From the NCBI GenBank assembly GCA_029953675.1, contig JAMWBK010000001.1:1178001-1242000 (forward strand): DNA of 64,000 nt. Direction: 5' to 3'. Shown piece by piece: positions 1 through 33,005 of the stretch (positions within the stretch are counted from its first letter, which is position 1; each line of letters opens with the position of its first letter). The position numbers and the translations under genes are program-made. Origin of the DNA: Rhodosorus marinus CCMP1338. Lineage: Eukaryota > Plantae > Rhodophyta. Under the pieces are notes generated by a model. It saw only the letters and a list, made by a program, of their open reading frames with translations, did not search any database and was not told where the DNA came from.

Positions 1-2535
1 CAACCTCAACCGTATGCCCTATCCGAGTGAAAAATTCGCTGAGGATGTACTTGAGGCAAGTGTGGCGCCTCGTACGGAGACCCCTCAACAGTCCGCAGGA
101 GCCCAGCAAGTGGTAGCCACAAGCGTCAATCCGACTCTCACATCCCTGACAGAAAGACGGCCGATTAGAGTGCCACGGAGCCTGTGGCAAACCGAGATAG
201 ATCCGTGCGGCAGAACGGAACTGGAAAGCATCGAGACGATGACTCAATGACGACGGTAGAGTGGTTAACCACAAGTGCGAGAGGTGGCCTCCCATGCCGC
301 GGAGACGAGCGGCAGTGGGAGGCGGCGTGAGAGGAGAATTGAGCATGACTGTGCGAGCGGCACTGTGTTGGCCCCAGGTGAGGCTATGTTGAATCACATC
401 AGTGCGGGAGCTCCACAATCGGCTCAAACCCGGGTAGTCTGCAACAGGTGACCCGGGGCTAGCCTCTCCGTCATCGGCAAAAACTCGGTCGAGGGGAGAA
501 TCCTCAATCTCTTCAGCTCGTCCCCATAACAGCTCCCTCCAGGAACGAAAGCGGCACCGATTTGCGTCCGGCACGGCGTTGCACCTCCTGAACGCGTGTT
601 GAATACCATCATAAATTGTCAAAAGCGGGGGCGGCAGGGTCCCTGGATCCTCGTTGGTCAAAGCTCGAGCCAAGAGGCAGGCACTTCGCATCTGGAAGGT
701 CACCAACGTTCGCAGCGCGGTAGCCCAGGAGGCAACCGCCGCTGGCGAGCATACCAGCCCACGGTCTGCGACGCCGAATCCCCCTAATCGCAACGGTAGA
801 GCGATCTGTGCACGAATCAAGTCCCTGTCGGGAGCAGCTTCAAGATCGAGGGGCTCATCCAAGAGCGTTCCCCAGTGTTGCAGGGTCATCTCGTCGGCTT
901 TAGCCGCGATCCACGAGCCCCAAGCTGGAGGCAGGCTGCGCAACCAGTAGTTGAGTCTGGGACCGGCACAAAAGCGGGAAAGCAAGCAGGCCGATTGCAG
1001 CATGCTGTCGGGTAGGTGCTCAATGGCGTCGGTGAGTTGCTTGTGCCGTGCCATAGTCGAAGAGTGGATGGCAGAGAGGCCAGCGACACGTCCCTCGGGG
1101 GGAGAAAGCGACATTTTTCTGTTTCCACAGTCAAACCGACGCGACGTGCAATCGCTTCGATCGCGGTCAGTCCCCTAGCCAGGGTGTCAGGGGTGCCCAG
1201 CAATGTTACGTCATCGTGGTACGCGCAGATTCGAAGATCCGAGACCTCAGTCGAAAGACGTAAAAGTACGAGCTGTAGGGCACAGGCATGAAGAAGAGGT
1301 CCGCAAGGGTCGCCTTTTTGGACGCCAGTATGTCCTTGAAAAACAGTGCCCTCCGTTGTCAAGTAGGGGAGGCTCTCCCCTCCGTAAATACCCGATAGAA
1401 ACGGCCACGCCTCCGGAAACACACGTCGGAGCACCTCTAGCGCATGCGTCCGCGACACGCTGTTGAATGCGTTCCGGAAATCAACCACCAAAACTCCCCA
1501 CTCCGGCCTACTGGCGCGTTCTAGCTCGATCCTATGGGTGATCAGTTCGCAACCCCCAGAAAATCCCACCCCTACTTGCAAGGGCGCCACAAAAGCTGTG
1601 ACGCGCTGGCGAAGGCGCTGGCATAGCCACCTCCCGGCTAACTTCCGTAGGCTCTCCACCATCCCGATCGGCAGAAGACGCGGGTGGGCCGGCTGGTGGT
1701 CAGGTTTCGTGAGCAAGCAAAGCTGTGCCTGCTGGAGATGTTCCCATGGCGCAGACGCACCCGATACGCCCTGGAACAACTTGTTAAGGATCCTCAGAAG
1801 CGCGCTCTGGCCAGGCTGGCTCAGGGCCTGCAATAGCTCTGTTCTTAGTCCGGAGGGTCCGGGACAGCGTCCCCGACGCGAGGTACGAAGTAAATCCTCC
1901 AGGTCAGACTCACTGAGCGTCAGATCGATGCGAAACCTGGCCAACTCCGGACGGTCTAAGAATACCTCGAATTCAGGGGACAAGTCCACGTCGGACTCAG
2001 GGAACAAAGACGACACCGTCTGGGCGAGACTATCATCGTAGAGGAGGACAGGCGCCTGGCCCTCCAAAACCCGCGCCGCTCGACTTAAATTGCCCACTGC
2101 TACCAATTTCTGTACTCGAGCCGGCACGGGCGACACTGTGCCATGCCGAGTCCGACGGGCGGATGGTGCTGACGACGCCAAATAGCTGCGCTGTAGTACT
2201 TCCAAGTCTCCCTTCCAGAACAGGGCCAGTCGGTCTCGTACTCGCCATCTGCGCTCCGATGTGTGAATGGTGGCCAGAATCAGGCGCGGCATGACCCCCA
2301 GAAAAACCCAAATGACTGTGTCCCGAATGTTACGAGCCAGGCTCGTGAAGATGAAATCGAGAATGGTTCCAGCTACTAGAAGGTCTCCACGAGGGAGGAT
2401 GACTGGGGGAATGCCCCCACGGAGGGGAAGCGAGCCTCCTTCCAAAGAAATCCACCGCCGGAGCCAACTCCGAAAACGCGTACGCCAAATGCCCCAGTCT
2501 CCGCCCTCCTTCAGGACATAAGACTGTAGATCCAT
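1..2535 (-). pseudogene. A1 ORF2 (RT, then CCHC/RLE region), frameshifted by an 82-bp deletion
   Basis: ORF 886..2535 (MDLQSYVLKEGG...AYHDDVTLLG). The sequence below ~1050 matches the C-terminal ORF 17389..19014 in another frame. Confidence 0.85.
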
Positions 2536-5265: not shown

Positions 5266-6633
5266 CTAAGCAGGCAAGACGAGCATTTTTGTAAAATTTT
5301 CGATTAGCAAAGGAAGCGCTTGATATAAGAACGAGCGAAACTTTCGCCTTACCCCTTCTTCTCCAGCGGGGCCACACACCGATCCGAAACTCCCTATTTG
5401 GGCGTCAAAGATACAACGGCCGGGTTGGCGTGCCAATTCCACGTCAAATTGGCCTTCGTTGAGGCCCTCGGGTTGGCCGAGTTGCAAGCTTCTCCATTCT
5501 CCTGTCGGTGGCAGACTTGAGTTCAAGCAATATCCGCAAATAACGCTGCCGATGCGCCCTACGACTGCGTAGTCCAGAAGCGGCCCAAAATAGGAATTCG
5601 TTGCCGGCTGCCCTACTATCAATGGGCCAGAATTCGCATAAACCTCGGCACTGGCGAAAGAGATAAATTCTAACAGCTGTCGTGGTTGCTCGACGGCTCT
5701 CACTGAATACCTCAGGGGCACTGGATTCGGAGCAACGCGCTCGAGAGCAAAAGCGGCTATATTCAAAGTAGACAACTCTGGCACCAAAAACACCGCAATG
5801 CTGAAAGAGTCGGAGAATCCTACAGAAGCTGCCTGCCGACGGATCACCGTACGCGCTTCCGCAGGGATGCTCGACCCCGGCGATGGACTGGGTACTCCTT
5901 CGTAAACAGTAAGCTCGAGCGCCTCTGGTTGGAGATCCAAGGCGGCGGGTGAAAACACAACTTGAATTGTGCTGCTATCACGGTTGATACGGTTGATGCC
6001 GGCAAACTCTGGTTGGCCACCGATAAAAGAGCACGAACCCTCGAGCCCGCATGCCAAGAATTCAAGCCCATTCTCATCGTCGATAGAAGTGCATGAAATG
6101 AAATCTTGAGTGGGGAGACAGGTTATGCCCGCCATTCTTGTAGCAGGCCCGCCCAGTTTAGCAGTGCGCACTTTGCCGTCCTCCATTCGAACCTTCGCTT
6201 CAACCAACAGCGACGGAGCGAGAAATTGTTGACTGCAGCAGTCACGGTCTGTCCTGATATCGTCCAGGCATGCGTCTACTCTCACCGCGGTCGGCTCACT
6301 ATCTAGAAACTTCCTCTTACGAGTGAACCGAGCTTTACCGTTAGGAATGTCTCCCGCCCAAAGCCCGAGTTTGGCTCGTCTAATCCCAACTCCAGCACGC
6401 ACGATAAAAATGAACCTGATACACGTCTCTCCCATGTTCGGTCCCTGCGTCTTCACAACATCGCTATTGCTTACGATTCCCACCGTTTCACCTTCAACTT
6501 CCAGTGCCAAACAATAGCGAGAAAAGCCTAAGGATGAAACGAGCGGATTAAAAAAGCTTGCGCATGTGGCAACATCGGCAATCGCCAAGCCAAAGATGCC
6601 GGCAACCAGGATTACTACCAACCCGTACTTCAT
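5266..6633 (-). CDS. Secreted protein, paralog 1 (455 aa): signal peptide, Cys-rich N-domain, lamin-tail-like C-domain
   Basis: Uninterrupted ORF with a hydrophobic N-terminus (MKYGLVVILVAGIFGLAIA); two close paralogs in the window; TATA-like GGGTATATA about 105 nt upstream. Confidence 0.85.
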   Translation of the reverse strand: MKYGLVVILVAGIFGLAIADVATCASFFNPLVSSLGFSRYCLALEVEGETVGIVSNSDVVKTQGPNMGETCIRFIFIVRAGVGIRRAKLGLWAGDIPNGKARFTRKRKFLDSEPTAVRVDACLDDIRTDRDCCSQQFLAPSLLVEAKVRMEDGKVRTAKLGGPATRMAGITCLPTQDFISCTSIDDENGLEFLACGLEGSCSFIGGQPEFAGINRINRDSSTIQVVFSPAALDLQPEALELTVYEGVPSPSPGSSIPAEARTVIRRQAASVGFSDSFSIAVFLVPELSTLNIAAFALERVAPNPVPLRYSVRAVEQPRQLLEFISFASAEVYANSGPLIVGQPATNSYFGPLLDYAVVGRIGSVICGYCLNSSLPPTGEWRSLQLGQPEGLNEGQFDVELARQPGRCIFDAQIGSFGSVCGPAGEEGVRRKFRSFLYQALPLLIENFTKMLVLPA

Positions 6634-8700: not shown

Positions 8701-11700
8701 TGGGAACACAGCCTCACCTGGGGTCAACACAGTGCCGCTCAGGCAATCTTGCTCAATTCTCCACTCACACCGCCTACCACCGCATTCAACATAGCCTTAC
8801 CTGGGGCCAACACAGTGCCGCTCACGCAATCTTGCTCAACTCTCCACTCACACGGCCTACCATCGCCGCTCACCTTCGTGGCATGGGAGGCCATCTCTCG
8901 CACCAGTGGTTAACGACTCTGCCTTCGTCGCCGGGTCACCGTCTCGATGCCTTCCAGTACCGCTCCGCCGCAAGGATCTACGTAGATTTGCCACAAGCTC
9001 CGTGGCACTCTAATCGGCCATCTTTCTGTCAGGGATGTGAGAGCCGGATTGACGCTTGTGGCTACCACTTCTTGGGTTCATGCGGACTGTTGCGAGGTCT
9101 CCGCACGAGGCTCCACACTCGTCTCAAGTACATCCTAAGCGAATGTTTAACTCGGGTAGGGCATACGGTTGAGATGGAATCGGAACTACGCAGATCGGTC
9201 TCGGACACGGCGCCGCCCCGCTGTATAGCAGATCTTCTTGTCTCAGACGCTGCCGCCCGACACTCAGCATATGTTGACCTCGCCATTACATGCCCTGTGG
9301 CGAGCGCCCACCTCACGGCTGCCGCCGGCCGCCGAGGGGCTGCCGCTTCGGCTCTTCGAAGAGTGAAGGAACGACGGTATGCTGAGAGCATGGCCAGTCT
9401 GCCCTACGCCGCGGGTCACTCCCACCGGTTCCACCCTTTTCATTGTGGAAAGCTTTGGTCACGTGGGGAAGTCGGGTTTGGAGTGGTTGCAGAAATGTTT
9501 TACTGAGCATCCTGTTGAATACTAGTTATTAGTTCATCTTCACGCCTTGCGTAGCGCTTCAGGCTATGCTAGTAGTCATTCAACATAGCCTCACCTGGGG
9601 CCAACACAGTGCCGCTCACACAGTCATGCTCAATTCTCCTCTCACGCCGCCTCCCACTGCCGCTCGTCTCCGCGGCATGGGAGGCCACCTCTCGCACTTG
9701 TGGTTAACCACTCTACCGTCGTCATTGAGTCATCGTCTCGATGCTTTCCAGTTCCGTTCTGCCGCACGGATCTATCTCGGTTTGCCACAGGCTCCGTGCT
9801 ACTCTAATCGGCCGTCTTTCTGTCAGGGATGTGAGAGCCGGATTGACGCTTGTGGCTACCACTTCCTGGGTTCCTGCGGACTGTTGCGAGGTCTCCGTAC
9901 GAGGCGTCACACTCGCCTCAAGTACATCCTCAGCGAATTTTTGACTCGGATAGGGCATACGGTTGAGGTTGAGTCGGAACTGCCCAGATCCATCTCGGAC
10001 TCTGCACCGCCCCGTTGTATAGCCGATCTCCTCGTCTCTGACGCTGCTGCCAGACGCTCAACATATGTGGACCTTGCGATTACCTGCCCCGTGGCCAGCG
10101 CCCACCTCACCGCAGCCGCGCGCCGCCGGGGGGCCGCGGCTTCAGCCCTTCGAAGAGTTAAGGAACGACGGTATGCTGAGAGCATGGCCAGTCTGCCTTG
10201 CGCTGAGGGTCGCTCTCACCGGTTCCAGCCATTCATTGTAGAAAGCTTTGGTCACGTGGATAAGTCGGGTTTAGAGTGGTTGCGGAAATGTTTTGCTGAG
10301 CATCCTACTGAATATTTGGCGCTCTTGAGGCGCTTAAGTGTCTCCCTTTGGCGATATTCCAGCGACATGCTTTCCGAGGCGCGCCATCGGCGCCTGGGGT
10401 TGCATGCTTCCCTCCCTAGTTATTAGTTCATCTTCACGCCTTGCGTAGCGCTTCAGGCTATGCTAGTAAAGTCGAGTAAAGTCCAGTAAAGTCGAGTCGA
10501 GTAAAGTCCAGTTGAATACTTGGAACTTTTGCGGCGCTTAAGTGCCTCTCTGTGGCGATATTCGAGTAGCATGCTTGCCGAGGCGTGCCATCGATGCCTG
10601 GGTTTGCACGCTTCCCTACCTAGTTCTTAGTTCCTTTTCACGGTTTGCGTAGCGCTGTAGGTTATGCTAATAAAGACAGTAAAGCCCCGGGTCATCGGTT
10701 GCCGATTACCCGAGTCTGAGCCGATTGTGGAGCTCGCGCACTGATGTGACTCAACATAGCCTCACCTGTGGCCAACACAGTGCCGCTCACGCAATCTTTC
10801 TCAACTCTCCACTCACACCGCCTACCGCCGCTCGCCTCCGCGGCTGCCGCCCGCCGCCGAGGAGCAGCTGCGGCGGCCCTTCGCCGCGTGAAGAGACAAC
10901 GGTATGCTGAGAGCATGGCCAGTCTGCCCTACACCGAGGGTCGCTCCCACCGGTTCCAGCCTTTTATTGTGGAGAGCTTTGGTCATGTGGATAAGTCGGG
11001 TTTAGAGTGGTCGCGGAAATGCTGAGCATCCTACTGAGTACTTGGCGCTTTTACGGCGTTTGAGTGCCTCCCTGTGGCGATGTTCTAGCAGCATGCTTGC
11101 CGAGTCGCGCCATCGGCGCCTGGGGTTGCACGCTTCCCGCCCTAGTTCTTAGCTGTTATGGGGACGAGCTGAAGCGATTGAGGATTGTCCCCTCGACCGA
11201 GTTCTTGCCGATGACGGAGAGGCTAGCCCCGGGTCACCTGTTGCAGACTACCCGGGTTTGAGCCGATTGTGGAGCTCCCGCACTGATGTGATTCAACATA
11301 GCCTCACCTGGGGCCAACACAGTGCCGCTCACACAGTCATGCTCAATTCTCCTCTCACGCCGCCTACCACTGCCGCTCGTCTCCGCGGCATGGGAGGCCA
11401 CCTCTCGCACTTGTGGTTAACCACTCTACCGTCGTCATTGAGTCATCGTCTCGATGCTTTCCAGTTCCGTTCTGCCGCACGGATCTATCTCGGTTTGCCA
11501 CAGGCTCCGTGGCACTCTAATCGGCCGTCTTTCTGTCAGGGATGTGAGAGCCGGATTGACGCTTGTGGCTACCACTTCCTGGGTTCCTGCGGACTGTTGC
11601 GAGGTCTCCGTACGAGGCGTCACACTCGCCTCAAGTACATCCTCAGCGAATTTTTGACTCGGATAGGGCATACGGTTGAGGTTGAGTCGGAACTGCCCAG

Positions 11701-12415
11701 ATAAATCTCGGACTCTGCACCGCCCCGTTGTATAGCCGATCTCCTCGTCTCTGACGCTGCTGCCAGACGCTCAACATATGTGGACCTTGCGATTACCTGC
11801 CCAGTGGCCAGCGCCCACCTCACCGCAGCCGCGCGCCGCCGGGGGGCCGCGGCTTCAGCCCTTCGAAGAGTTAAGGAACGACGGTATGCTGAGAGCATGG
11901 CCAGTCTGCCTTGCGCTGAGGGTCGCTCTCACCGGTTCCAGCCATTCATTGTGGAAAGCTTTGGTCACGTGGATAAGTCGGGTTTAGAGTGGTTGCGGAA
12001 ATGTTTTGCTGAGCATCCTACTGAATATTTGGCGCTCTTGAGGCGCTTAAGTGTCTCCCTTTGGCGATATTCCAGCGACATGCTTTCCGAGGCGCGCCAT
12101 CGGCGCCTGGGGTTGCATACTTCCCTCCCTAGTTATTAGTTCATCTTCAAGCCTTGCGTAGCGCTTCAGGCTATGCTAGTAAAGTCCAGTTCTTAGTTCC
12201 TTTTAACGCCTTGCGTAGCGCTTCAGGCTATGCTAGTATGCTAGTCCAGTTAAGCCCAGTAAAGCCAATAGGGAGCTCTTCAGTAAAGTGTACACGGTTA
12301 CCCACGCGCCGATGGCGCGCCTCGGCAAGCCGGTAGGGGGGGTTTGCACGCTGCCCTACCTAGTTCTTAGGCCCTTTTCACGCCTTGCGTAGCGCTTTAG
12401 GCTATGCTAATAAGT
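8700..12415 (+). mobile_element. Head-to-tail array of about 7 5'-truncated family A copies (approx. 8700-9575, 9576-10512, 10513-10690, 10690-11140, 11140-12190, 12190-12275, 12300-12415)
   Basis: ORFs 8700..9506, 9566..10426, 11258..11704 and 11780..12139 encode the CQGC...HFLGSC knuckle and RLE ending LGLHASLPSY/S. Most copies end in TTGCGTAGCGC...GGCTATGCTA plus tail, followed immediately by the next copy. Confidence 0.9.
10464..10512 (+). repeat. A1 3' tail: 10-nt AGTAAAGTC(C/G) units (4 full, plus partials)
   Basis: tagtaaagtc gagtaaagtc cagtaaagtc gagtc gagtaaagtc cagtt, directly after ggctatgc. Confidence 0.9.
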
Positions 12416-15500: not shown

Positions 15501-16727
15501 CCCAGATCGAAACGATTGCACCCGGAGTAGGTCCGACTTTGGAACCCGAAAAGTGTCGTTTGCTCGCTCCAAGTGAAGGTTCGATGGCCTCTCTGCCATC
15601 TAATCTACGAACCATTGCCGAACGTGAAGGACTGGAGCACCACGGCGTCGGTTTCGGAAGCAACAACTTCGTCCAAGCCTCTTGCGAACGAGTTTTGACT
15701 CGGCACAAGCAGCTCTCTGACGCCATTGAGCGCCTTCCAGACAGCATGCTGCAATCGGCCTGCTTACTTTCCCGCTTTTGTGCCGGTCCCCGACTCAACT
15801 ACTGGTTGCGTAGCCTACCACCCGACTGGGGTTCGTGGGTCGCCACCAAGGCCGACGAGATGACGCTGAACCACTGGGGAACGCTCTTGGATGAAGCTCT
15901 CGATCTTGAAGTTGCTCCCGATAGGGACTTAATTCGTGCCCAGCTCGCTCTACCATAGTGCTTAGGGGGATTTGGTGTCGCAGATCGGGAGCTCGTCTGC
16001 TCGCCTGCGGGGTCGCCTCGTGGGCAACCGCGCTCCGTACCTTGGTGACTTTCCGGATACAAAGTGCCTGAATTTTGAATCGAGCACTGACTAGGGTGGA
16101 CCCAGTGACCCTTTCGCCCCAGATTTTGACGATCTATGACAGTCTACAACAGGCGTTCCGGAAGTGCAACGCGCCTGCCGGACGAGAATCGATCCCGTTT
16201 TCTCTCCTGGCGGGAACTGACATGGTGACGAACTGAGGCGATTGAGGACTCACCCATTGACAGAGTTCTTGCCGATGAGGGAGAAGCTAGCCCCAGATCA
16301 CCTATTGTAGATTACTCAGGTCTGAGTCGACTGTGGAGCTCCCGCACTGATGTTATTCAACACAGCCTCACCTGGGGCCAACACAGTGCCGCTCACGCAA
16401 TTTTCCTCAACTCTGCCCTCACACCGCCTACCACCGCCGCTCGCCTTCGCGGCATGGGAGGCCATCTCTCGCACCTGTGGTTAACCACTCTGCCTTCATC
16501 GCCGGGTCACCGTCTCGATGCCTTCCAGTTCCGCTCCGTCGCAAGGATCTACTTAGGTTTGCCACAAGCCCCGTGGCACACTAATCGGCCGTCTTTCTGT
16601 CAGGGATGTGAGAGCCGGATAGGCGTTTGCGGCTACCACTTCTTGGGTTCATGCGGACTGTTGCCAGATCTCCGCACGAGGCGCCAGACTCGTCTCAAGT
16701 ACATCCTAAGCGAATGTTTAACTGGAC
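12535..16727 (+). mobile_element. Family A2 element, nearly full length, multiply frameshifted, 3' end broken off
   Basis: ORF1 remnants from ATG 12735 (MVGVSPRP...) to TAG 14092 (...GSKGEKHD). ORF2 from ATG 14124 (MDLRSYVVKEGGDWG). ORF 15002..15958 has QQGDP and YHDD. Ends within the RLE region at ...GAATGTTTAACT. Confidence 0.88.
14105..14122 (+). promoter_or_regulatory. Conserved inter-ORF hairpin GGCTGCGAGGTCGCAGCC, 1 nt before the ORF2 ATG
   Basis: Identical in A2 (14105-14122) and A1 (2537-2554 and 37067-37084, minus strand), within a 31-nt spacer whose flanks differ. Confidence 0.6.
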
Positions 16728-16898
16728 TTTACTAGCATAGCCTGAAGCGCTACGCAAGGCGTGAAGATGAACTAATAACTGGGAGGGAAGCGTGCAACCC
16801 CAGGCGCCGATGGCGCGCCTCGGAAAGCATGTGGCTGGAATATCGCCAAAGGGAGACACTTAAACGCCTCAAGAGCGCCAAATATTCAGTAGGATGCT
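16726..16898 (-). mobile_element. Short A1 3' fragment joined tail-first to the broken A2 copy
   Basis: Top strand reads GAATGTTTAACT|GGACTTTACTAGCATAGCCTGAAGCGC. Confidence 0.85.
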
Positions 16899-16899
16899 G

Positions 16900-17340
16900 C
16901 CGGAAAAGTGGGACACCGTGTCACTTCGGTAGTTATTAATACGTCCCACCTGGGCACTGCCTCAATTATTCCAGAATACAAGGTTTATTTCTATCCTAAT
17001 TGCTCCCTAATTAGGTAGTTTATCCCAAAACTAGCTTTCCTTTTCTAACTAACTGTGGTTCTTCTTTCCTTACCTTTTTTCTTCTCTACCTGCCAGCTAA
17101 CCTCGAACGTATTGGGTGGGGTTCCATCGTACTTATACGCTTACTTCATCGAAATGGGCAATACCGCCGAGACTAAAATAAGAGTTGTTAGCTCCATAAA
17201 CTCTGGTAGTACCTGAGCATAATTTTAGCTCTTCCGGATGATAGTGGTGGAAGGTTGAATTGCTTAGAAGGGCTCAGAAGTCACAGTTATTTTTTCAATG
17301 ATTAATTTCTGTTTGGTGGGTTGACTATTTTTATTTGATT
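16900..17340. repeat. AT-rich ~440-bp block X, copy 1
   Basis: Near-identical to 23950-24390 (offset 7050; I counted about 4 substitutions). No ORF. Confidence 0.9.
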
Positions 17341-19647
17341 GGACTTTACTAACAAAGCCTGAAGCGCTACGCAAGGCGTGAAGATGAACTAATAACTAGG
17401 GAGGGAAGCATGCAACCCCAGGCGCCGATGGCGCGCCTCGGAAAGCATGTCGCTGGAATATCGCCAAAGGGAGACACTTAAACGCCTCAAGAGCGCCAAA
17501 TATTCAGTAGGATGCTCAGCAAAACATTTCCGCAACCACTCTAAACCCGACTTATCCACGTGACCAAAGCTTTCCACAATGAATGGCTGGAACCGGTCAG
17601 AGCGACCCTCAGCGCAAGGCAGACTGGCCATGCTCTCAGCACACCGTCGTTCCTTAACTCTTCGAAGGGCTGAAGCCGCGGCCCCCCGGCGGCGCGCGGC
17701 TGCGGTGAGGTGGGCGCTGGCCACGGGGCAGGTAATCGCAAGGTCCACATATGTTGAGCGTCTGGCAGCAGTGTCGGAGACGAGGAGATCGGCTATACAA
17801 CGGGGCGGTGCAGAGTCCGAGATTGATCTGGGCAGTTCCGACTCAACCTCAACCGTATGCCCTATCCGAGTCAAAAATTCGCTGAGGATGTACTTGAGGC
17901 GAGTGTGACGCCTCGTACGGAGACCTCTCAACAGTCCGCAGGAGCCCAGCAAGTGGTAGCCACAAGCGTCAACCCGGCTCTCACATCCCTGACAGAAAGA
18001 CGGCCGATTAGAGTGCCACGGAGCCTGTGGCAAACCGAGATAGATCCGTGCGGCAGAACGGAACTGGAAAGCATCGAGACGATGACTCAATGACGACGGT
18101 AGAGTGGTTAACCACAAGTGCGAGAGGTGGCCTCCCATGCCGCGGAGACGAGCGGCAGTGGTAGGCGGCGTGAGAGGAGAATTGAGCATGACTGTGTGAG
18201 CGGCACTGTGTTGGCCCCAGACGAGGCTATGTTGAATCACATCAGTGCGGGAGCTCCACAATCGGCTCAAACCCGGGTGGTCTGCAACAGGTGACCCGGG
18301 GCTGGCCTCTCCGTCATCGGCAAGAACTCGGTCGAGGGGAGAATCCTCAATCGCTTCAGTTCGTCCCCATAACAGCTCCCTCCAGGAACGAAAGCGGGAC
18401 CGATTTGCGTCCGGCACGGCGTTGCACCTCCTGAACGCGTGTTGAAGACCATCATAAATTGTCAAAAGCGGGGGCGGCAGGGTCCCTGGATCCTCGTTGG
18501 TCAAAGCTCGAGCCAAGAGGCAGGCATTTCGCATCTGGAAGGTCACCAACGTTCGCAGCGCGGTAGCCCAGGAGGCAACCGCCGCTGGCGAGCATACTAG
18601 CCCACGGTCTGCGACGCCGAATCCCCCTAATCGCAACGGTAGAGCGATCTGTGCACGAATCAAGTCCCTGTCGGGAGCAGCTTCAAGATCGAGGGGCTCA
18701 TCCAAGAGCGTTCCCCAGTGTTGCAGGGTCATCTCGTCGGCTTTAGCCGCGATCCACGAGCCCCAAGCTGGAGGCAGGCTGCGCAACCAGTAGTTGAGTC
18801 TGGGACCGGCACAAAAGCGGGAAAGCAAGCAGGCCGATTGCAGCATGCTGTCGGGTAGGTGCTCAATGGCGTCGGTGAGTTGCTTGTGCCGTGGCGAAAC
18901 TCGCTCGCAGGATGCTTGGACAAAGTTGTCAGTCCCCAATCCGACGCCGTGGTGTTCGAACCCTTCACGTTCGCTGATTAGTCGCAGAGTGGGTGGCAGA
19001 GAGGCCAGCGACACGTCCCTCGGGGGGAGAAAGCGACATTATTCTGTTTCCACAGTCAAACCGACTCGACGTACTTGCAAGGGCGCCATAAAAGCTGTGA
19101 CGCGCTGGCGAAGGCGCTGGCATAGCCACCTCCCGGCTAACTTCCGTAGGCTCTCCACCATCCCGATCGGCCGGAGACGCGGGTGGGCCGGCTGGTGGTC
19201 AGGTTTCGTGAGCAAGCAAAGCTGTGCCTGCCGGAGATGTTCCCATGGCGCAGACGCACCCGATACGCCCTGGAACAACTTGTTAAGGATCCTCAGAAGC
19301 GCGCTCTGGCCAGGCTGGCTCATGGCCTGCAATAGCTCTGTTCTTATTCCGGAGGGTCCGGGACAGCGTCTCCGACGCGAGGTACGAAGCAAATCCTCCA
19401 GGTCAGACTCACTGAGCGTCAGATCGATGCGAAACCTGGCCAACTCCGGACGGTCCAAGAATACCTCGAATTCAGGGGACAAGTCCACGTCGGACTCAGG
19501 GAACAAAGACCACACCGTCTGGGCGAGACTATCATCGTAGGGGAGGACAGGCGCCTGGCCCTCCAAAACCCGCGCCGCTCGACTTAAATCGGCCACTGCT
19601 ACCAATTTCTGTCTCGAGCCGGCACGGGCGACACTGTACCATGCGCT
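17341..19647 (-). mobile_element. 5'-truncated A1 copy with an in-frame 426-bp deletion of the RT core and a nonsense codon; intact C-terminal ORF
   Basis: ORF 19039..19605 reads ...APLQV|RRVGLTVETE*. ORF 17389..19014 (541 aa) covers RT thumb, CCHC and RLE. Tail at 17341-17350. Confidence 0.9.
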
Positions 19648-21051: not shown

Positions 21052-23325
21052 GTTTACTTCTTAACTGGTGGTGGCTTGACTACTTGCTTCCTGTTCAGCT
21101 TCCTTCCGATTTCTTATCGCTGTACTACTCCCTGAGAAACAAGTGATTGTCGATGCCTGCTACTCGACCACCAGATGGACTGATTTAGCTCTTCCAACAC
21201 TTTATATACTCTTTCACATAGTCTTCGAGTCTGAAGCCAGCAGCTGGAAAAGCCAAGATTGCTCGTGTATAACCCACTCTTTGGGGGCGCTAGTGGAACA
21301 ACGAAGTTTCATCAGCAATCACGGAAAAGATTCGAAAGTGAGCTATTAGATACTTTGGCTACATTTCCTGCGACTTTGGATCCAAAAAAAGGTCGATTTT
21401 CCTCCTTCTCCTGGCACAACACTCATCCAACTGACCCTCATCGTACTGACCAGGTCTGTTCATGTTGAAACCGCTCCTCTGGGGCGGCTGTGGAACACAG
21501 AAGTTTCATCAGTAATCGCGAAAAGAATTGCTAGTTAGCTCTTGTATGCTCTGGATATATAACTTGTAACTTTAGGATTGAAATATAAGCCCGAGCCAAT
21601 GATCGCTATTACAACAATCGTTGAAGCGCGACTCTCACCGGCTAACAACAGCTAGGATCGTTTGTTGGATGCACTGTACAACCGACAGCGCTGCGGAGCA
21701 AATAATAATCTATCGATCGTTTCAAGTTCATCGATCTAATTACCCTGTTAGAGCGAAAGAATGTCGGGAAAAATTGAGTGTGGAACTGTCCTTGTTAGGA
21801 AATTGTGGAACAGATAAGTTTCATTATTAATTGCAATGGGGACCCCGAATTTGTGCGTTAGATACCGCAAGTTGCATCTCTTGGGTTTGGCATAAAAGTC
21901 GTATAAAATCCCCGAATTCACAACATTTACTGAATACTGTTAGCGGTGTGTTGACGGGTCCGACGTTTAAGGAGCAGAAAAGAGCATAAAACTGACGGAC
22001 TCGAGAGAAAAACAGACTGACAGTTGCGAGTTTCATCGTTCCAGTCAAGAAGCTACTCCCTGAGTGGCTCCCTGTGACGCTCACACTCCAAAAATAGCTC
22101 ACTGATCACAAAACACGTCTTGAAATTCGTATCAAGCTAGTCTCTATCTCACCTCACCACATCCGATGACCGCATCAGCCATCTCTCGGCTACCCCAACG
22201 GTTTTCGGATTTCCACCCATCCGCGACTCGGTAAGCGACTCGGGGGGTGACTCAACATGGCACCATAACTCACCCGTCAAAAATTCTCGATAACACACGC
22301 GTCAAATATCTAGCCAGTATCTCAGTTGACTACATCCGACGACCTCATCAGCCATCTACCGGTTTCCCCAATGTACTTCCTAAAATACATTCATTCTATC
22401 GCACACGTTCCTGATCACATCCGAATCGAACCAATCAGTGGTGATGGTTGGGTGGTTACGTGCGGTCGCTGCAGTAGGTAGCTCTCGGATAAAAGTTACG
22501 GGGTTACGTTAGGCTGCGATGAGATTAGCTGCGCTGTGGTAGGTAGCTGCCAAAGAAGGCTACCGGGTTGTGAACCAGCCAGCATCTCAGCTCTCCTCGC
22601 TGATCACCCGTTTGAAGTCCTGATTGTGACGTATCGCGAAAGCGATTCCAAAATCGAGCCCTCATATGCTCCGTTAGTACTACTACTATCGGCGGTACGC
22701 ACTAAGCGGGACTGGGGGCGCGATGCGCACTAGTTGCTAGGAAAAATAGCGTACAATCCAAGGGGCGCTAGTATGCTGCTGGAGCGCAATAAGCCGAAAC
22801 TGAGCAGATGAGTAGGAGTACTCAGCAGAGTGGTCAGCAAAGATTTTGCGCAGGCACCCCATGCTTGACTTTTGAAGATGATCAAAGCTTTTCCAAAGTG
22901 GAAGGCTATATTTGCACCGGGCTATATGTTGACTATGTTTCTTTTCAAGTCACCTTTGGTTCAAATAAAAGTCAGATCGAATTACCGTATCTGCTACATT
23001 ATTGTTGAATATTATTAAGGCCTATCTAAACTGATCCGACGTTGAAAAAGCAAAACCGACAACCTCAATAGCCATCTATCGGTACCCGAGAGACGTTGGG
23101 GTTCAATCAAAAGGTGAGCAGCGACCGGCTCGGTTTGAGTACCTCTTTGACGCCACACCCCAACCGTTATCTAAAAGAGCACGACCAATTTCTGATCAAG
23201 TTCACATCAACACAGTCAGTATCTCAGACCACTACATTGGTCGGAATGACCAGCAATCTATTGGTGTCAACTGCAAGATCATCATGCTCCCATAAGCAGT
23301 GTCTACAGTCCAAACGGCTTCCGGG

Positions 23326-23522
23326 TTGTACCCCCCAAGCCGTTGTACCCCGAAGCCGCTGTACCCCGAAGCCGTTGTACCTCGAAGCCATTGTACCCCC
23401 GAAGCCGTTGTACCCCGAAGCCGTTGTACCCCGGAGCCGTTGTACCTCGAAGCCATTGTACCCCCGAAGCCGTTGTACCCCGATTCCGTTGTACCCCGAA
23501 GCCGTTGTACCCCCGAAAGCCG
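23326..23522. repeat. 16-17-nt minisatellite (TTGTACCCCGAAGCCG), 12 units
   Basis: Counted directly. The C-run varies from 4 to 6; a variant pair (ttgtacctcgaagcca + 5-C unit) recurs at units 4-5 and 8-9. Confidence 0.95.
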
Positions 23523-23542
23523 TTGGAGACTCCAATGGCGGT

Positions 23543-23836
23543 ATCAAATACGCGGGGGCTTTGTCTTCCCCTGGTGTTCGTGCTTCGGCACTAGCACATC
23601 GCTTGGTACCCCTGATCATTGAGTGCTTTGGGTTCATGGACTCTGTTGGTTCTCGCTGGCTTCGGGAGTTGTTCCGCGAACGCCCTGACCGTCTTCAATC
23701 GTTGTTTACCCGCTTAAGTTTCCTGCTGTGGCGCATGAATGCCGCTTTGATGTTGGAGGCGCGAGTACTTCGCCGCGCTTAGTCTTTTTTTCCCCTCGGG
23801 GTTTTTTTTTCAGCCTCCGATTAAACCATTCATTCA
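23543..23836 (+). mobile_element. Family B 3' fragment (~290 bp)
   Basis: Essentially identical to the B 3' end (IKYAGALSSPG...MLEARVLRRA*), ending AACCATTCATTCA. Confidence 0.9.
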
Positions 23837-23949: not shown

Positions 23950-24390
23950 CCGAAAAAGTGGGACACCGTGTCACTTCGGTAGTTATTAATACGTCCCACC
24001 TGGGCACTGCCTCAATTATTCCAGAATACAAGGTTTATTTCTATCCTAATTGCTCCCTAATTAGGTAGTTTATCCCAAAACTAGCTTTCCTTTTCTAACT
24101 AACTGTGGTTCTTCTTTCCTTACCTTTTTTCTTCTCTACCTGCCAGCTAACCTCGAACGTATTGGGTGGGGTTCCATCGTACTTATATGCTTACTTCATC
24201 GGAATGGGCAATACCGCCGAGACTAAAATAAGAGTTGTTAGCTCCATAAACTCTGGTAGTACCTGAGCATAATTTTAGCTCTTCCGGATGATAGTGGTGG
24301 AAGGTTGAATTGCTTGGAAGGGCTCAGAAGTCACAGTTATTTTTTCAATGATTAATTTCTGTTTGGTGGGTTGACTATTTTTATTTGATT
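23950..24390. repeat. AT-rich block X, copy 2
   Basis: Matches 16900-17340, and is again followed by an A-type terminus. Confidence 0.9.
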
Positions 24391-24465
24391 GGACTTTTCT
24401 AACATAGCCTGAATGAATGGTTTAATCCGAGGCTGAAAAAAAAAAACCGCGAGGGGAAAAAAAGA

Positions 24466-27400
24466 CTAAGCGCGGCGAAGTACTCGCGCCTCCAACATCA
24501 AAGCGGCATTCATGCGCCACAGCAGGAAACTTAAGCGGGTAAACAACGATTGAAGACGGTCAGGGCGTTCGCGGAACAACTCCCGAAGCCAGCGAGAACC
24601 AACAGAGTCCATGAACCCAAAGCACTCAATGATCAGGGGTACCAAGCGATGTGCTAGTGCCGAAGCACGAACACCAGGGGAAGACAAAGCCCCCGCGTAT
24701 TTGATCTCTTTGCGGCGTCTCATGCTGGCGGCGGCAGATCCACGGCGCTCCCCCGCAGCCGGGAGATAACGACTAGCTTGAGGGTTGGGAACAGCAAGAT
24801 CAACGTATGTGGTACGGCGGCTGTCGTCACAGGTGATCACCAGGTCGGCTACACGGCGTTCATCATTTTGAAAGTCCGCGACGGGTAAAGGTTTCTCACG
24901 TTCGATTTCCAGACCGGCTTGCCGGACTATAGGCCGAAGTTCCCGGTATAACAGGTTCAAGATCCGTGTGTGGCGGCGGGTTCGAGCACCTTTCACCGCC
25001 GGGCAACTAGCGAGCAGGTGGGCGCCAAAATCTGCGTTGTCTTCAGTCTGAGAGCAGAGAGGGCACGACGAACCCATCTCGTACGGCCAAGGGGGCTGCT
25101 GTAAGCCGAGGTATAAGCGCAGTGAAGTACGCACTTCGAAATCCGACAGTGTGAGTGGCGGAAAGGCTGGTACGGTCATGAGCCACTGAGAGCTAAGAAC
25201 CCCTCCAAGACTACGTAGGCGGGCGCGAGCGCGAGAAGATGAGACCATCTGCGCGAGGAGTCGGCCATATGCAGCACGGTGCAAGTCCCAAGAAAGGATA
25301 TTTTGCAGCGCATCCGTGCGTGCTTGAGCTCGGCTCCCAGCGCGCTGGGAATCATCAGGAGGATCAACTGGAACTTCTTCTTCTGCGGCAACCACTGGGT
25401 CAATCTCCCCTAGAACAGGTTCAGGCGCAGGACGAATCCCCGGGGCGGAGCCTCGAGAGCGGTCAAATACAGCTCGCCAGTCAGGAAGACGGGGTTGAAC
25501 GGTTTCGGGGAGACTAGTACAGGAGTTCAGGGCGGTTTGGAGCTCCAGAAACAAGTCTTGGGCGCTTTCCGGTACGCTGGGAAGCAAGACACCCCGCGAG
25601 AGGCTCGCCATCAAATTGCGGAACTTCGAGATACCCAAGCTGCTCAAAGTGGGAAGTGCGGTTCCCCAGGCCCCTACTGCGGCTGCAGGTTGGACCACAA
25701 CACGATTGCAGAGGCCCAGTCCCCCCAATCGCAATGGGAGGCCTACCTGGGCGCGCACAACATCACAGGTGGGTCGCGGCAGAGCGCTCAGCTCTTCATC
25801 GAGAAATACCCCAGGTCACGGAAACTTTCAGCATCCGCACGAGTGGCCAACCACCGGCCCCAATGAGTTGGAAGTGAGCGAAGCCAATAGGTTAACCGCT
25901 GACTGCAACAATACCGAAACAGCAACAACGAGCACTGGAGAAAGCCCGGAGGTAGCCGTCGAAGCTCTGCAACCAGCTGTCTGTGCTTACCGAGGAGCTG
26001 CAGCAACTCGCCTTCAACGAAGGACGGCGACCCGTAGGGGATGCCTAAGTGGACAAAACCATCCGGTCTCCAAATATCCTGGAACGACGCAGGTACCTGC
26101 TGCTCTTGTGCAGCTACACCTCCCCAGTAGAACGATTTGTGATGATTAACCTCCAGGTCAACCCGCGAAGCCAAGGAGCGGAGACGATCATAAGCGAGCG
26201 CTAGAGTATCAGGGGGCCCCAGGAGGCACACGTCGTCGTGGTATGCAACCGTACGAACCTGCGGGAATTCGGAGCGAAGACAAAGCAAGACGAGTTGTAG
26301 TCCACAGGCATGTAGGAAAGGGGACAAGGGATCACCCTGTTGTACCCCTGTGCGCGCCGCAAACGTGTGTGAGGAAGCGCCAAGGGTGTCATAGGTAGCC
26401 CCACGACCAAGCGGAGAATAAAGTCTACTAACAAAGGGAAAGCCTACAGGGAAGACTTCGCGCACCACGTGCATGAGAGCCGGACGAGAGACGCGGTTGA
26501 ACGCATTGGTAAAATCTACAGAGAGGAGCCCAGAATCTGGGGAGTACGCCATTTCCGAACGGAGTAAAACAGACAACAACTCACAGCCACCACGATAGCC
26601 CACGCCTAACTGCACGTGCCCAAAGAAACGGCGGGATTCGGGAACCAGGATTTTCACTAACCATCGCGCCGCCAATTTGCGGACCACCTCAACCAGGCCA
26701 ATAGGGCGAATAGCAGGGCTCGAGGCCGTGTGGCTGGGCTTCGAAAGCAGACACAACTGCGAACGCCCGACCAAGAACCACGCACACTCACACAGGGGAT
26801 CACCATTCACAAGCGCTTCGACCACCCACGCCAACGCCTTCAAACCTTCATCACTTAAGAAACGGAGATATTCCACCCGCAGCCCCGAGGGCCCTGGGGA
26901 ACGGCCCTTCGGAGCATCATGAACCAACTCACGCACCGCCTCCAGATTGACCACTAACCGCGCACTGGGATGTGGCGCGGCGCGGTACTCTTCCAACACT
27001 GATTCAAACGAGGAGTCCCAAGGGGAGCCTTCCGAGGGAAAGAGCAAACGGAGCGGTGAAGAAAGATCATCGGAGTATGGAACCACAGGTTGCCGCTGCT
27101 GGAGGATCCCGGCTGCCCGCCGCAGATCACCGCCTGCCACCGCGTGACGCGCCCGATTCTGTCGAGAAGACCTAAAAGCTGAGGAAGCACTAGGAGAAAA
27201 GGAAGAGAGAGAAGCGAAATAAAGACGTTCGAGGTCCTCAAAGTCGCCGGAAAGGAACATTTGCAGTTTTCGGCGAGGGTGGACCCGGCGAGGATGTGGG
27301 TTGAGGGGGACGGTAGAGGATGTGAGCACGAGGCGGGGAAAAAGAACAAGAGTTCCCAGCGAAGAGAGCAGTGAGGGTTCGCGGCGACCTGCTGCCAGAG

Positions 27401-27607
27401 AAAATCCAACACCAATCCTAGGGGCTTATGAAGTCGACGAGGGAGCCGTACGGCCGTGCTCTGACGACAAAGGGGAAGGGAACCGTCCGGGTAGGAGGCG
27501 ATAAGGTGCGAAAACCACGAGAGAACACGCTCATGCCAGGCTGAGCGGTCACTGGTAAACAGGGGTAACCGGGACGACACGCACGCGGAGGAGGAAGACT
27601 CAGACAT
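24466..27607 (-). pseudogene. Family B ORF2 (~1050 aa if repaired): RT, CCHC, RLE; two apparent 1-nt deletions (~27335 and ~25800)
   Basis: Pieces 26954..27826 (from MSESSSS), 25788..27329 and 24466..25758 join by homology to family A and to the 31.5-kb remnant (FP|RLVL and GYF|LDEEL). Confidence 0.85.
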
Positions 27608-28898
27608 CGGGCCTCCCCTCAGTCGGGAAGGCAGATCGAATATCCGGAGGAGGTGCCTCGGAGGGAGGCTCAGGAGCCGCACGACGCTTACGTGGAGGGC
27701 GCACGAAGGAACTAAAAGACCTGAAGAAAGTAGACACAGGGTTTTCAGCAGCGGAGTCTTGACTGAGGGTGTCCAGAGCCAGCGGATTGGGAGAGGCCGA
27801 TGGTGCTTCTGCCATGTCGGTGTCACGAGCCTCGGAGACAGGGCGAGGGGAGGAAGGGTGCTCAGGAGTCGGCGGCAGAAGGTCAGACGCAGGGTGGGCT
27901 TCCAGCAGGGTGGCCTCAGTGGAGAGGAAGGCCTCTAGCGCGGTGCGGAGGACCCCGCGAGGAGGAAAACGCGCGAAGAGGCTCGCCTGTATGCGCGAGA
28001 GCCGCGCCGCATGAGTGTGTAGCGCGACAACCGAAGCCTGCGAGGCATCCAGGTTTTGCAAGGCCGACGGTGGAACCCAGCCGGCGTCAAAACGATCGAA
28101 CTCGACAAACAAAGAGACATGAGGACGAGTCAGTATCATGTTGGCCAGAGCAGAGCGCTGGGGCGCGGGGGTGGTTACAAGCGATTGAAGGAACTGGTAA
28201 GCCGAGTCAGTAACAAGAAAACAGGCATGAGGGCCCGTGAAGTCCACATATAGGAATTCAGACGGGGCGACCCCAAGGGAGGAAGCCATGGTGTCGCGAA
28301 AATCGCGGTAGTGGACGGGCGCGCGGCCCCGACCACGAGAGGGGGTCTGGGGACGCACGTTCGTCATCCAAACAAAGTGGAACGGAGATAGTTGGCGAGA
28401 AGAGTCAATAGGGATGTGTTGTGGCATCATACGCACCATTGCCGTCGTGCGTTGTTCAGAAGAGCCCCTGCGTAGGACCTGCGAATAGGTCGCACGTGGG
28501 GCACTGGAGGGAGCAGGATTCGGGCCCGACGCGGGCCCAGGAGGCGTCTGTCCTTGAATAGGGGTAGGCCAGTCGGAATCAGGAATGACCGGAGCGGAGC
28601 GCTCGGGTCGGGTGGAGGCAGGCCCCGCTGTACCGTGCGGATCCGCGGGGACGGGCACCGGGGGGTATGGGGCAGGCGCGGAGGCGGAGAAGCGCTCCAA
28701 ATAGGCGATCAGCAGGGGCAGGCGGTGTTCCTGGGAAGCAGTCACAAGAAGACTCGTCAGTTTCGAGCAGATCCCATGGGCTAACTCGTCAGCGCAGTCC
28801 GTGAGGGTGGCCGCGGTACTAAACCCGCCCACGCTGAGCTCCACGCGCGCTGAGAGAACGGCTCCGTCCGCCGGAATGGGTGGGGAAACCCCAACCAT
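27600..28898 (-). CDS. Family B ORF1 (~432 aa from MVGVSPPIP), putative nucleic-acid-binding protein
   Basis: Open frame 27600..29087; N-terminus MVGVSP is shared with A1/A2; TYSQVLRRG and WMTNVRPQ...RDFRDT motifs are homologous to A ORF1. Confidence 0.8.
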   Translation of the reverse strand: MVGVSPPIPADGAVLSARVELSVGGFSTAATLTDCADELAHGICSKLTSLLVTASQEHRLPLLIAYLERFSASAPAPYPPVPVPADPHGTAGPASTRPERSAPVIPDSDWPTPIQGQTPPGPASGPNPAPSSAPRATYSQVLRRGSSEQRTTAMVRMMPQHIPIDSSRQLSPFHFVWMTNVRPQTPSRGRGRAPVHYRDFRDTMASSLGVAPSEFLYVDFTGPHACFLVTDSAYQFLQSLVTTPAPQRSALANMILTRPHVSLFVEFDRFDAGWVPPSALQNLDASQASVVALHTHAARLSRIQASLFARFPPRGVLRTALEAFLSTEATLLEAHPASDLLPPTPEHPSSPRPVSEARDTDMAEAPSASPNPLALDTLSQDSAAENPVSTFFRSFSSFVRPPRKRRAAPEPPSEAPPPDIRSAFPTEGRPDV

Positions 28899-29155
28899 AA
28901 CGATTGGAAGGTGTGAAAAACCGATTCCCCCACGAAACCCCCAAAAAGAGAACTTGTTCCCAACGTTTGCAACCAAAGAAAAACCACCACGACCTCCAAG
29001 GGGCGCTAGCAACCCCCAGCACGCACCACACCAATAGAAGATGCGGGGGAAAGGCTGCAGAAAGAAGCGCCTCCCACCGAAGAACACAATTGCGACTCAA
29101 AACCACCAAAAGCCAGCACCATACACCCTCACGAAACCAAAAACTGCTTCTTTGT

Positions 29156-29754: not shown

Positions 29755-30098
29755 ACGTCGCAAAGAGTTGAAATATGCGGGGGCCTTGTCTTCCCCAGGC
29801 TTTCGTGCTTCGGCTAGCTCATCGCCTGGTACCTCTGGTCATTGAGTGCTTTGGGTTTATGGATTCCGTTGGTTCTCGTTGGCTTCGGGAATTGTTCCGC
29901 GAACGCCTTGACCAACTATCCTCGTTGTTTACCCGCGTAAGTTTCTTGCTGGACTTTACTACCCGTCTAAGTTTCTTGCTGTGGAGCATGAACGCTGCTT
30001 TGATGTTGGCGCGCGATCTTCGCCGCGCTTAGTCTTCTTTTTCCCCTCGGCTCGGGGTTTTTTTTCTTTTAGCCTCCGATCAAACCAATTCATTCATC
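29755..30098 (+). mobile_element. Diverged B-like 3' fragment
   Basis: RRRKELKYAGALSSPG...LVIECFGFMDSVGSRWLRELFRE...; ends AATTCATTCA. Confidence 0.8.
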
Positions 30099-30740: not shown

Positions 30741-31045
30741 GGCTATGTTGTGATTTTGTTGGCTTTGTTTGGCTTTATTGGTTGGTTTTATTGGGCTTTA
30801 CTGGGCTTTATTAGGCTTTATTAGCATAGCCTACAGCGCTACGCAAACCGTTAAAAGGAACTAAGAACTAGGTAGGGAAGCGTGCAAACCCAGGCGCCGA
30901 TGGCGCGCCTCGGCAAGCATGCTGCTCGAATATCGCCACAGAGAGACACTTAACTGGGCTTTGTTAGCAGAGCCTGAAGCGCTACGCAAGGCGTGAAAAG
31001 GAACTAAGAACTAGGGAGGGAAGCGTGCAAACCCAGGCGCCGAAG
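30741..31045 (-). mobile_element. Two head-to-tail A2 3' fragments; the first has a long ~8-unit tail (30741-30824)
   Basis: Element sense: ggctatgc taataaagcc taataaagcc cagtaaagcc caataaaacc aac caataaagcc aaacaaagcc... Confidence 0.85.
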
Positions 31046-32170: not shown

Positions 32171-32971
32171 TACGGCGCTCACAGCCTAGGCGGATGGAAG
32201 GTCTTTTAGAGTTGGGTTCAAAGATTTCGTTGGTTCTTGTTGGCTACGAGAGTGGTTCTGCGAGCGTCCCGGCTCTCCTCGTTGTTTACTCGTCTAATTT
32301 TTCCCCTCTGTTTAGTCGGAGTCTAACTACCCTGAAAATCGAGAAACAATACGCTGAAGACTTGTGTCCAACAATAAAGCAGCGTTGGAATGCCAGAGGG
32401 TCAACCAGGCACAGCTCCGAGAGGGCCTATCAAGGGATGCCCTGGATTGCTGCAAAAAAAAAAAAAAAGCGCAAGCCAACGAGAACCTGCACTACAAATT
32501 AAACCAAAGCATTCGATGAAGAGCGGGGCAAACCGGTAGAACAATGCCTGAGTTTACTCCTGTGGGTTTATGGAAGCGCTGATTTGCAGCACCCGATATC
32601 CTCTCCGCCCCATAGTCCATTCTTTTTATTCCCACAATTTTTGGTTATTGTCTTACACCCTCAGTCACGTTCATTCAGTTCTGCTGAACGAGAGATAGAA
32701 TCTGGGAATCTGGACGTTAGAAACTCCCTTTTTTTAACGCGTTTCAATCTCCCAACGGTTTTTTTTTGTCTCATACTTCGAACAAGGAAAAAAAGCCGGT
32801 GGGAGAACTGGCTACTTGACCAGCAAGCAAGCACCATTCATGGTGCTGACTTGCTGCAAAGCTTGTATGAGCAGTTTTTTGTCAAAACGGCCTTTGGCTC
32901 TAGTGAGATCGTACTGTCATTGGAGAACACGCAAGCCCCAGTAAAGCCTAGTTGATCTAATGCTGTGTAGA

Positions 32972-33005
32972 GGCTTCACTGGGCTTTACTAGCATAGGCT
33001 TCACT
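32972..33005 (-). mobile_element. 16-nt family A terminus-only insertion with 9-bp TSD
   Basis: GGCTTCACT-[GGGCTTTACTAGCATA]-GGCTTCACT. The insert is the reverse complement of TATGCTAGTAAAGCCC and is absent at the matching position of paralog 1. Confidence 0.75.

Follow-up and report, generated by a model that had tools for sequence, protein, structure and literature searches.

What is the origin of the short tandem repeats in which the retrotransposon copies of this locus end? The 64,000-nt stretch analyzed here (the window) covers positions 1,178,001-1,242,000 of the 3,806,663-bp contig JAMWBK010000001.1 in assembly GCA_029953675.1 of Rhodosorus marinus CCMP1338 (window positions 49460-64000 are 100% identical to it). 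It is interior DNA of a unicellular red alga, about 1.2 Mb into the contig, and not a chromosome end. Positions 1-39400 form an island of about 40 kb, at ~1.18-1.22 Mb of the 3.8 Mb contig, that consists almost entirely of nested copies, in both orientations, of two families of long interspersed nuclear elements (LINEs), tentatively referred to as A and B. In family A, the aligned 3' ends carry a short tandem repeat instead of a poly(A) directly after the 3' untranslated region (UTR). We consider it fairly probable that these 10-nt units form the 3' tail, a tandem repeat, of an R2-like LINE with its own endonuclease, and that they are made by tail-target priming, slippage, and template jumping as proposed below.

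Tail units and their arrival with element A

The UTR core of A, TTGCGTAGCGCT, has 13 exact occurrences in the window (0.25 expected), plus two with a single mismatch, and the unit pattern ARTAAAGYCS occurs 15 times (0.73 expected). Alignment of the 3' ends sorts the copies into a young A1 lineage, whose members are 96-98% identical among themselves, an A2 lineage 81-86% identical to A1, and intermediates. The tails discussed in the text are the following.

10443-10463 (+): predicted 7-bp hairpin GCGUAGC / GCUAUGC with loop GCUUCAG, which ends one base upstream of the tail and is conserved in all copies
10465-10510 (+): tail of young A1 copy c, AGTAAAGTCG AGTAAAGTCC AGTAAAGTCG AGTCG AGTAAAGTCC A, i.e., four units plus a 5-nt AGTCG stutter
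10669-10687 (+): tail of older A2 copy d, AATAAAGAC AGTAAAGCCC
12235-12266 (+): mixed tail of older copy g, AGT ATGCTAGT CC AGTTAAGCCC AGTAAAGCC, also written AGTATGCTAGTCC AGTTAAGCCC AGTAAAGCC
12227-12242 (+): 8-nt duplication ATGCTAGT across the UTR/tail border of copy g
16724-16733 (-): one-unit tail of A1 copy j (16717-16898), which adjoins an older A copy in the opposite orientation
17341-17350 (-): one-unit tail of A1 copy k (17341-19644)
30741-30822 (-): longest tail, of A2 copy m, AATAAAGCCT AATAAAGCCC AGTAAAGCCC followed by degenerate units of 9-13 nt
30953-30965 (-): tail AACAAAGCCC AGT of the 89-nt 3' fragment n, which is stacked on the 5' end of m
34779-34960 (-): A1 copy o, with a two-unit tail at 34792-34811

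A1 UTRs read ..CACGCC TTGCGTAGCGCT TCAGGCTATGCT and are followed by AGTAAAGTCC-type units, as a sequence-only reading of this DNA had proposed and as the alignment confirms at five loci. The A(A/G)TAAAGCC(C)-type units assigned by the same reading to A2 UTRs are likewise present at 10669-10687, 30741-30822 (-), and 30956-30965 (-), also behind intermediate UTRs, and the tail noted as mixed near 12230-12270 is indeed so. The lineages thus differ in GTCC (A1) versus GCCC (A2 and relatives). UTR class and tail class separate 5/0 versus 0/5 (Fisher p = 0.008), so tail type does track the subfamily; A1, however, is one recent burst and not five independent trials, and the association demonstrates lineage inheritance more than repeated independent pairing. 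Unit number, predicted to reach about eight, ranges from 0 to about 8 in the window, although in the longest tail only the first three units are clean and the remainder are 9-13 nt variants. Among the A1 copies the numbers are 0, 1, 1, 1, 2, and 4.5, the end without any unit lying at 29157 (-). Two further A2-type ends are found just beyond the window (L122:15300 and L122:17400).

Several insertions can be compared with the sequence that they interrupted.

11153-12187 (+): 5'-truncated young A1 copy f, whose tail is exactly one unit (12178-12187)
10843-11152 and 12188-12234 (+): older A2-like host copy of f, in two parts, e and g
11144-11152 and 12188-12196 (+): 9-bp duplication AGTTCTTAG around f
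9523-10510 (+): composite insertion consisting, in this order, of a 48-nt A1 3' piece, AGTAGTC, copy c from ATTCAACATAGCC onward, and the tail
9514-9522 and 10511-10519 (+): 9-bp duplication GTTGAATAC around this composite
8784-9522 and 10511-10687 (+): older host copy of the composite, in two parts, b and d
29931-29980 (-): tail-only insertion inside a family-B open reading frame (ORF), a single AGTAAAGTCC at 29951-29960
29931-29950 and 29961-29980 (-): 20-bp target duplication of the tail-only insert, with 2 mismatches
32971-33005 (-): mini-insertion ATGCT AGTAAAGCCC (15 nt, 32981-32995) flanked by 10-bp duplications AGTGAAGCCT
34779-34791 and 34948-34960 (-): 13-bp duplication AATTAAAACCATT of copy o
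34934-34947 (-): 14-nt 5' filler ATGCTAGTAAAGTC of copy o, equal to the RNA 3' end (UTR end plus tail)

Copy f splits the older A2-like copy, whose sequence ...CCCT AGTTCTTAG stops at 11152 and resumes as AGTTCTTAG TTCC... at 12188. Between the UTR of f and the AGTTCTTAG duplication lies exactly AGTAAAGTCC, and the older copy has no such repeat there. Similarly, the composite with copy c splits another older copy, with GTTGAATAC duplications on both sides. The shortest insert between target-site duplications is one unit; for the tail-only insert at 29951-29960 (-), the empty site is seen in three intact B copies. Since such a repeat is missing from the intact targets, the tail belongs to A, and its units were copied from A's own RNA. 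This agrees with the earlier proposal that the tail is templated by the element rather than taken from a host telomere, as the duplications bracket UTR plus tail, an empty site exists, and the position is interior.

We also considered the stacks as simple nested insertions of 5'-truncated copies into tails, which is rejected for f/g and c/d, where the duplications place the young copy inside the older one. In a separate observation, old copy b (8784) and young copy c (9578) begin at the same internal position, ATTCAACATAGCC, and a 79-nt fragment (8705) begins 4 nt further in; the shared start may reflect the 5' end of a subgenomic RNA, a strong stop, or a favored joining site.

Element A and its endonuclease

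Two long coding segments represent the protein of A.

886-2535 (-): reverse-transcriptase (RT) part of the A ORF
17389-19014 (-): C-terminal 541 aa of the A ORF, comprising thumb plus linker, CCHC knuckle, and predicted restriction-like endonuclease

Pfam RVT_1 was detected in three ORFs (E 8e-16 to 2e-11), and the best PDB sequence matches of the A RT are R2 proteins (E 4e-9). Within the last 541 residues of the ORF lies a CCHC knuckle that can be aligned to that of R2. In an alignment of nine relatives (A, the second family of the window, and seven distant relatives), C341, C344, H354, C359, D424, K454, and G columns are invariant, in the pattern of a restriction-like endonuclease. An AlphaFold model of the C-terminal part has a mean pLDDT of 65, rising to 70-93 over residues 340-530; a fold search with it gave seven R2 structures as the only significant matches (E 5e-6 to 3e-3), with restriction enzymes following weakly. 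No Pfam match to an apurinic/apyrimidinic endonuclease (Exo_endo_phos) was present in any upstream ORF scanned. On these grounds, i.e., the RT and its R2 matches, the knuckle and endonuclease columns, the exclusively R2 folds, and the lack of an Exo_endo_phos match, A is an R2-like LINE with its own predicted restriction-like endonuclease. A Penelope-like, endonuclease-deficient, telomere-bound element was considered as well and is ruled out by the endonuclease domain and the interior position.

Many A copies are 5'-truncated, and their duplications of 9, 9, 10, 13, and 20 bp are footprints of target-primed reverse transcription. The five mapped targets all differ and have in common only an A-R-Y start (4/5), so A does not show strict single-site specificity. 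According to a RepeatMasker table, LINE/CRE-SLACS repeats make up 9.04% of the R. marinus genome (PMC10250338, supplement file 8), and family A is probably among them; this label would point to the CRE clade. A Joint Genome Institute (JGI) transcript contig, L001, is 80% identical to A in DNA, with an ORF 77% identical in protein, and carries stacked copies with the related tails CAATAAACCAAAC and AAATGAACC AGTGAAACC; therefore, relatives of A are transcribed, and their units have drifted along the lineage.

Used as queries for homologs, the RT part of the protein found 9 relatives and its C-terminal part 1, with no further R. marinus copies among them. A metagenome scan with TTGCGTAGCGCTNNAGG gave 120 loci, all chance matches except one already known, the pattern being too short. 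Upstream of the RT region is a long ORF of 546 aa (37097-38737) without a Pfam match, which may be a candidate ORF1. At 10395-10421 and the homologous positions, a predicted stem CUGGGG...CCCUAG overlaps the ORF end and differs between A1 and A2 by a compensatory G:C to U:A change (five sequences each).

The second R2-like family, B, is represented at 24414-29100 (-), 23543-23810 (+), 61165-61901 (+), and about 29880-30040 (+). Its 3' end is constant, ...TTTTTTTTTCAGCCTCCGATTAAACCATTCATTC, without a variable repeat tail, and one B copy sits within an A 3' UTR, at 24413/24414.

Proposed priming, slippage, and template jumping

We propose that the element RNA would end in one or more units, right after the small predicted hairpin. 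The endonuclease would nick DNA immediately 5' of a unit-start-like A-R-Y sequence, and the nicked strand would pair with one unit of the RNA tail, where reverse transcription would begin; the pairing register would determine the number of units copied. The nascent complementary DNA (cDNA) could then re-align on AGU triplets, which lie every 5 nt in AGUAA-AGUCC, gaining or losing steps of 5 or 10 nt and leaving sloppy junctions at unit position 10. The same enzyme would also jump end-to-end onto the 3' ends of other RNAs, producing stacked 3' fragments and a chimera with a small nuclear RNA (snRNA).

With regard to priming, the duplications start with AGTTCTTAG, AATTAAAACC, AGTGAAGCCT, AGCAAGAAAC, and GTTGAATAC. 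Four of the five open with A-R-Y like the unit (p = 7e-5 against the trinucleotide content of the window), and several resemble it beyond the first three bases. These starts suggest base-pairing between tail and target, the nicked strand probably annealing to one unit of the RNA tail. Folding predicts the tail to be unpaired.

With regard to slippage, the unit reads AGTAA-AGTCC, with AGT every 5 nt. All differences among the ten A1 units fall at position 10, the inter-unit junction, and in 17 other units position 10 is again the most variable and also changes length (units of 9-13 nt). An extra AGTCG at 10495-10499 represents a 5-nt step, ATGCTAGT is doubled at the UTR/tail border of copy g, and a CGGTTT stutter occurs in another UTR. 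The AGTCG was among the partial repeats pointed out previously. Of the AGT triplets that trail several tails, at least the one at 12188-12196 opens a target-site duplication. Stutters and junction-limited variation fit RT slippage by re-alignment of the nascent cDNA, and telomerase-like reiterative copying before elongation would be a reasonable mechanism.

Evidence for jumping comes from junctions within single insertion events and from one chimera.

63560-64000 (+), continuing to L122:14901: A-U5-A chimera, i.e., an old A 3' end plus AACAATA, U5 snRNA at 63670-63783, and a 5'-truncated A copy

The filler ATGCTAGTAAAGTC at the 5' junction of copy o lies within the AATTAAAACCATT duplications, and the 48-nt 3' piece plus AGTAGTC ahead of copy c lies inside one duplication pair. 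In fragment n, the AG after AACAAAGCCC is attributed to the RNA tail because it is not native m sequence. In the chimera, position 1 of a full-length U5 snRNA (55 bits, the only Rfam match in the window) directly follows the A tail AACAATA, and the truncated A copy follows the snRNA directly. The stacked 3' fragments and the chimera point to template jumping, which would account for a large part of the head-to-tail stacking that might otherwise pass for a telomeric array.

Several points weigh against this scheme. The sample consists of about 16 three-prime ends from a single 71-kb stretch, many of them from one young lineage. Stutters and junction variation fit a multi-unit RNA tail primed in different registers equally well. 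The patterned G/C alternation at position 10 of the 10465-10510 tail suggests a duplicated 20-nt block, which could stem from a two-unit template or from DNA slippage at a later stage. Toward its outer end, the A2 tail at 30741-30822 is too heterogeneous for single-unit copying, and part of this tail may be A-rich target DNA. The 3' hairpin appears in the alignment, minimum free energy, and single folds, but with z ~ -1 and one of seven pairs changed on both sides it is not exceptional. For copy k, no target duplication of at least 8 nt was found.

Among other explanations, the one that survives best, although we think it rather unlikely, is that the units are simply an inherited part of the 3' UTR, with master copies that differ in unit number and later DNA slippage, deletion, or mutation, and no reiterative copying. 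It accounts for the one or two units of most tails, for the resemblance of the 10465-10510 tail to a duplicated 20-nt block, and for a tail type that goes with the lineage like any inherited sequence. Less easily reconciled with it are the spread from 0 to 4.5 units within A1, whose copies share 96-98% identity, and the limitation of variation to the unit junction, including 5-nt steps at AGT triplets; moreover, arrays of only two to four 10-nt units rarely undergo replication slippage. It is somewhat less probable still that the A RT runs genuine repeat-addition cycles on a template of about 1.3 units (AGUAAAGUCC-AGU), re-aligning on the 3-nt redundancy before elongation, and much less likely that the motif or A elements also cap R. 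marinus chromosomes.

A role of the unit in RNA processing would be compatible with priming and slippage as proposed here, but we regard it as doubtful. Its A(A/G)UAAA hexamer could help to form the transcript 3' end, the repeat being kept for that: AATAAA or AGTAAA, a poly(A)-signal-like hexamer, lies inside nearly every unit, and several tails end in ...CC A, a CA-type cleavage context. However, no poly(A) run follows the units in any aligned copy, the transcript contig L001 continues for about 270 nt past its tail, and the hexamer is missing from the tail that follows the L001 3' UTR.

That the repeats are target DNA is very improbable. Here, A would insert into a pre-existing (AGTAAAGYCC)n microsatellite, as Dong inserts specifically into (TAA)n, and the tail would be a target remnant. 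Duplications that open with unit-like sequence (AGTGAAGCCT, AATTAAAACC, AGCAAGAAAC) could be read this way, and so could the degenerate outer part of the 30741-30822 tail. Yet the intact versions of the sites of f and of the tail-only insert lack such a repeat, the targets differ among themselves, and the unit variant goes with the UTR of the inserted element, not with the site. For four inserts (f, the copy-c composite, the tail-only insert, and the 15-nt insert), intact targets without the repeat rule out both a microsatellite target and telomeric capture.

An origin as host telomeric repeats (array form (GGACTTTACT)n), or as telomerase healing products captured between telomere-associated elements, can practically be dismissed for this interior window, since the locus lies 1.2 Mb into a 3.8 Mb contig, the units occur in both orientations with at most 3-4 clean units and lie within target duplications, the element has its own predicted endonuclease, and the complementary strand, which the sequence-only reading had thought telomeric in appearance, is not G-rich. 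Such an origin was conceivable given that head-to-tail stacks of 5'-truncated copies look like telomeric retrotransposon arrays, and that the genome paper reports assembled telomeres without stating their repeat (PMC10250338); a survey of red-algal telomeres holds no Rhodosorus data. In the window, every array follows a UTR directly or sits between duplications, and the longest is 82 nt and degenerate, unlike the long homogeneous arrays of chromosome ends. Mapped insertions of A went into older LINE copies and unique DNA, not into the telomere repeats that MoTeR, SART/TRAS, and GilM/GilT enter.

Neighboring features and related systems

The window holds further features. A 16-nt tandem repeat, GTTGTACCCCGAAGCC, is present in about 12 copies at 23325-23525, with higher-order periods of 49 and 65 nt, and abuts the 5' end of a B fragment. 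Positions 16900-17340 and 23950-24390 are 99% identical, including an A copy end (tail plus flank AATCAAATAAAAATAG), and represent a segmental duplication inside the repeat island. An ORF of about 455-510 aa occurs in three copies, 5266-6633 (-), 33060-34586 (+), and 43677-45155 (-), which are 72-80% identical in DNA; the start of the 43677-45155 ORF is signal-peptide-like, none of the three has a Pfam match, and they represent a host gene family or else a portion of another repeat. At 59460-61018 is a gene with a Hint (hedgehog/intein-type) domain and TPTPTQTATQ linker repeats; its ORF at 59870-61018 is 97% identical to the R. marinus protein NDN08_005326 but spans only about half of the NCBI protein, presumably due to introns.

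Number-variable tandem-repeat tails ascribed to RT slippage, as we propose for A, are already well known in LINEs and short interspersed nuclear elements (SINEs). The (TAA)n tail of the Drosophila I factor and the (TGTAA)n tail of eel UnaL2 vary in repeat number, which has been attributed to RT slippage (PMC3747384), and the reference lists of PMC3747384 and PMC6007223 contain, by title, Tu (2004) and Chaboissier (2000), with "slippage retrotransposition" in an Aedes SINE. Like A, I factor and UnaL2 have a non-poly(A), short tandem-repeat tail that varies between copies. Theirs adjoins a conserved 3' stem-loop, to which the weakly supported predicted hairpin of A may be a counterpart. They differ from A in their units of 3-5 nt, versus 10 nt with an internal 5-nt sub-period, and in their apurinic endonuclease (APE)-type enzymes, versus a predicted R2-type restriction-like endonuclease in A, whose host is a red alga. 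New in A are the length of the unit, 10 nt with its 5-nt sub-period, the R2-type enzyme that is not strictly site-specific, and the host, a red alga.

For the proposed pairing of tail and target, a parallel exists in RTE-clade LINEs and SINEs with microsatellite-like tails, in which the duplication opens with bases that match the tail repeat, and RNA-target pairing or steering of the nick has been suggested (PMC6007223). The overlap in RTE is one or two bases, whereas in A it comprises the three bases A-R-Y and often extends further into the unit. In L1, the nicked strand similarly pairs with the poly(A) tail of the RNA.

R2 of Bombyx, birds, and turtle shares with A the order of RT, CCHC, and restriction-like endonuclease (predicted in A), and its 3' UTR is recognized by the R2 protein. 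End-to-end template jumping of the R2 RT is cited in PMC2881922 as documented by Bibillo and Eickbush (2004). Unlike A, which occupies many different sites, often older LINE copies, R2 uses a single site in 28S ribosomal DNA and lacks a 10-nt repeat tail. In the CRE clade, MoTeR of Magnaporthe bears telomere-like repeats at an element end, according to PMC7367193. A differs in its location, which is neither telomeres nor spliced-leader genes, and in its repeats, which sit at the 3' end and, as far as can be judged, do not match the host telomere motif.

Telomerase re-aligns its product on a short terminal redundancy of the template, as proposed for A on AGU...AGU. Telomerase, however, uses a separate, dedicated RNA and builds long homogeneous arrays at chromosome ends, whereas in A no more than a few units would be added in one event, at an internal site, before the rest of the element is copied. 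Chimeric U6/L1 retrocopies, in which the full-length snRNA 3' end is joined to a 5'-truncated LINE, are explained by template switching. The chimera of A differs from them in that the snRNA is U5 instead of U6, the LINE is R2-like, and a second jump to another A RNA would have occurred at the snRNA 5' end.

Although about 9% of the R. marinus genome consists of LINEs (PMC10250338), it seems that the ends and insertion sites of a red-algal LINE family have not been characterized before. Knowledge of telomeres is unchanged by A. The footprints of A are unusually easy to read for three proposed RT behaviors, namely tail-target pairing, slippage in steps of 5 or 10 nt, and end-to-end jumping, including onto an snRNA. 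R2-type enzymes are under development for gene insertion, and a target-tolerant relative that would start on a short and well-defined repeat could be a useful comparison. If the repeat-addition reading were true, the A enzyme would be a LINE RT that naturally translocates its template in the style of telomerase, from a retroelement lineage with a restriction-like endonuclease.

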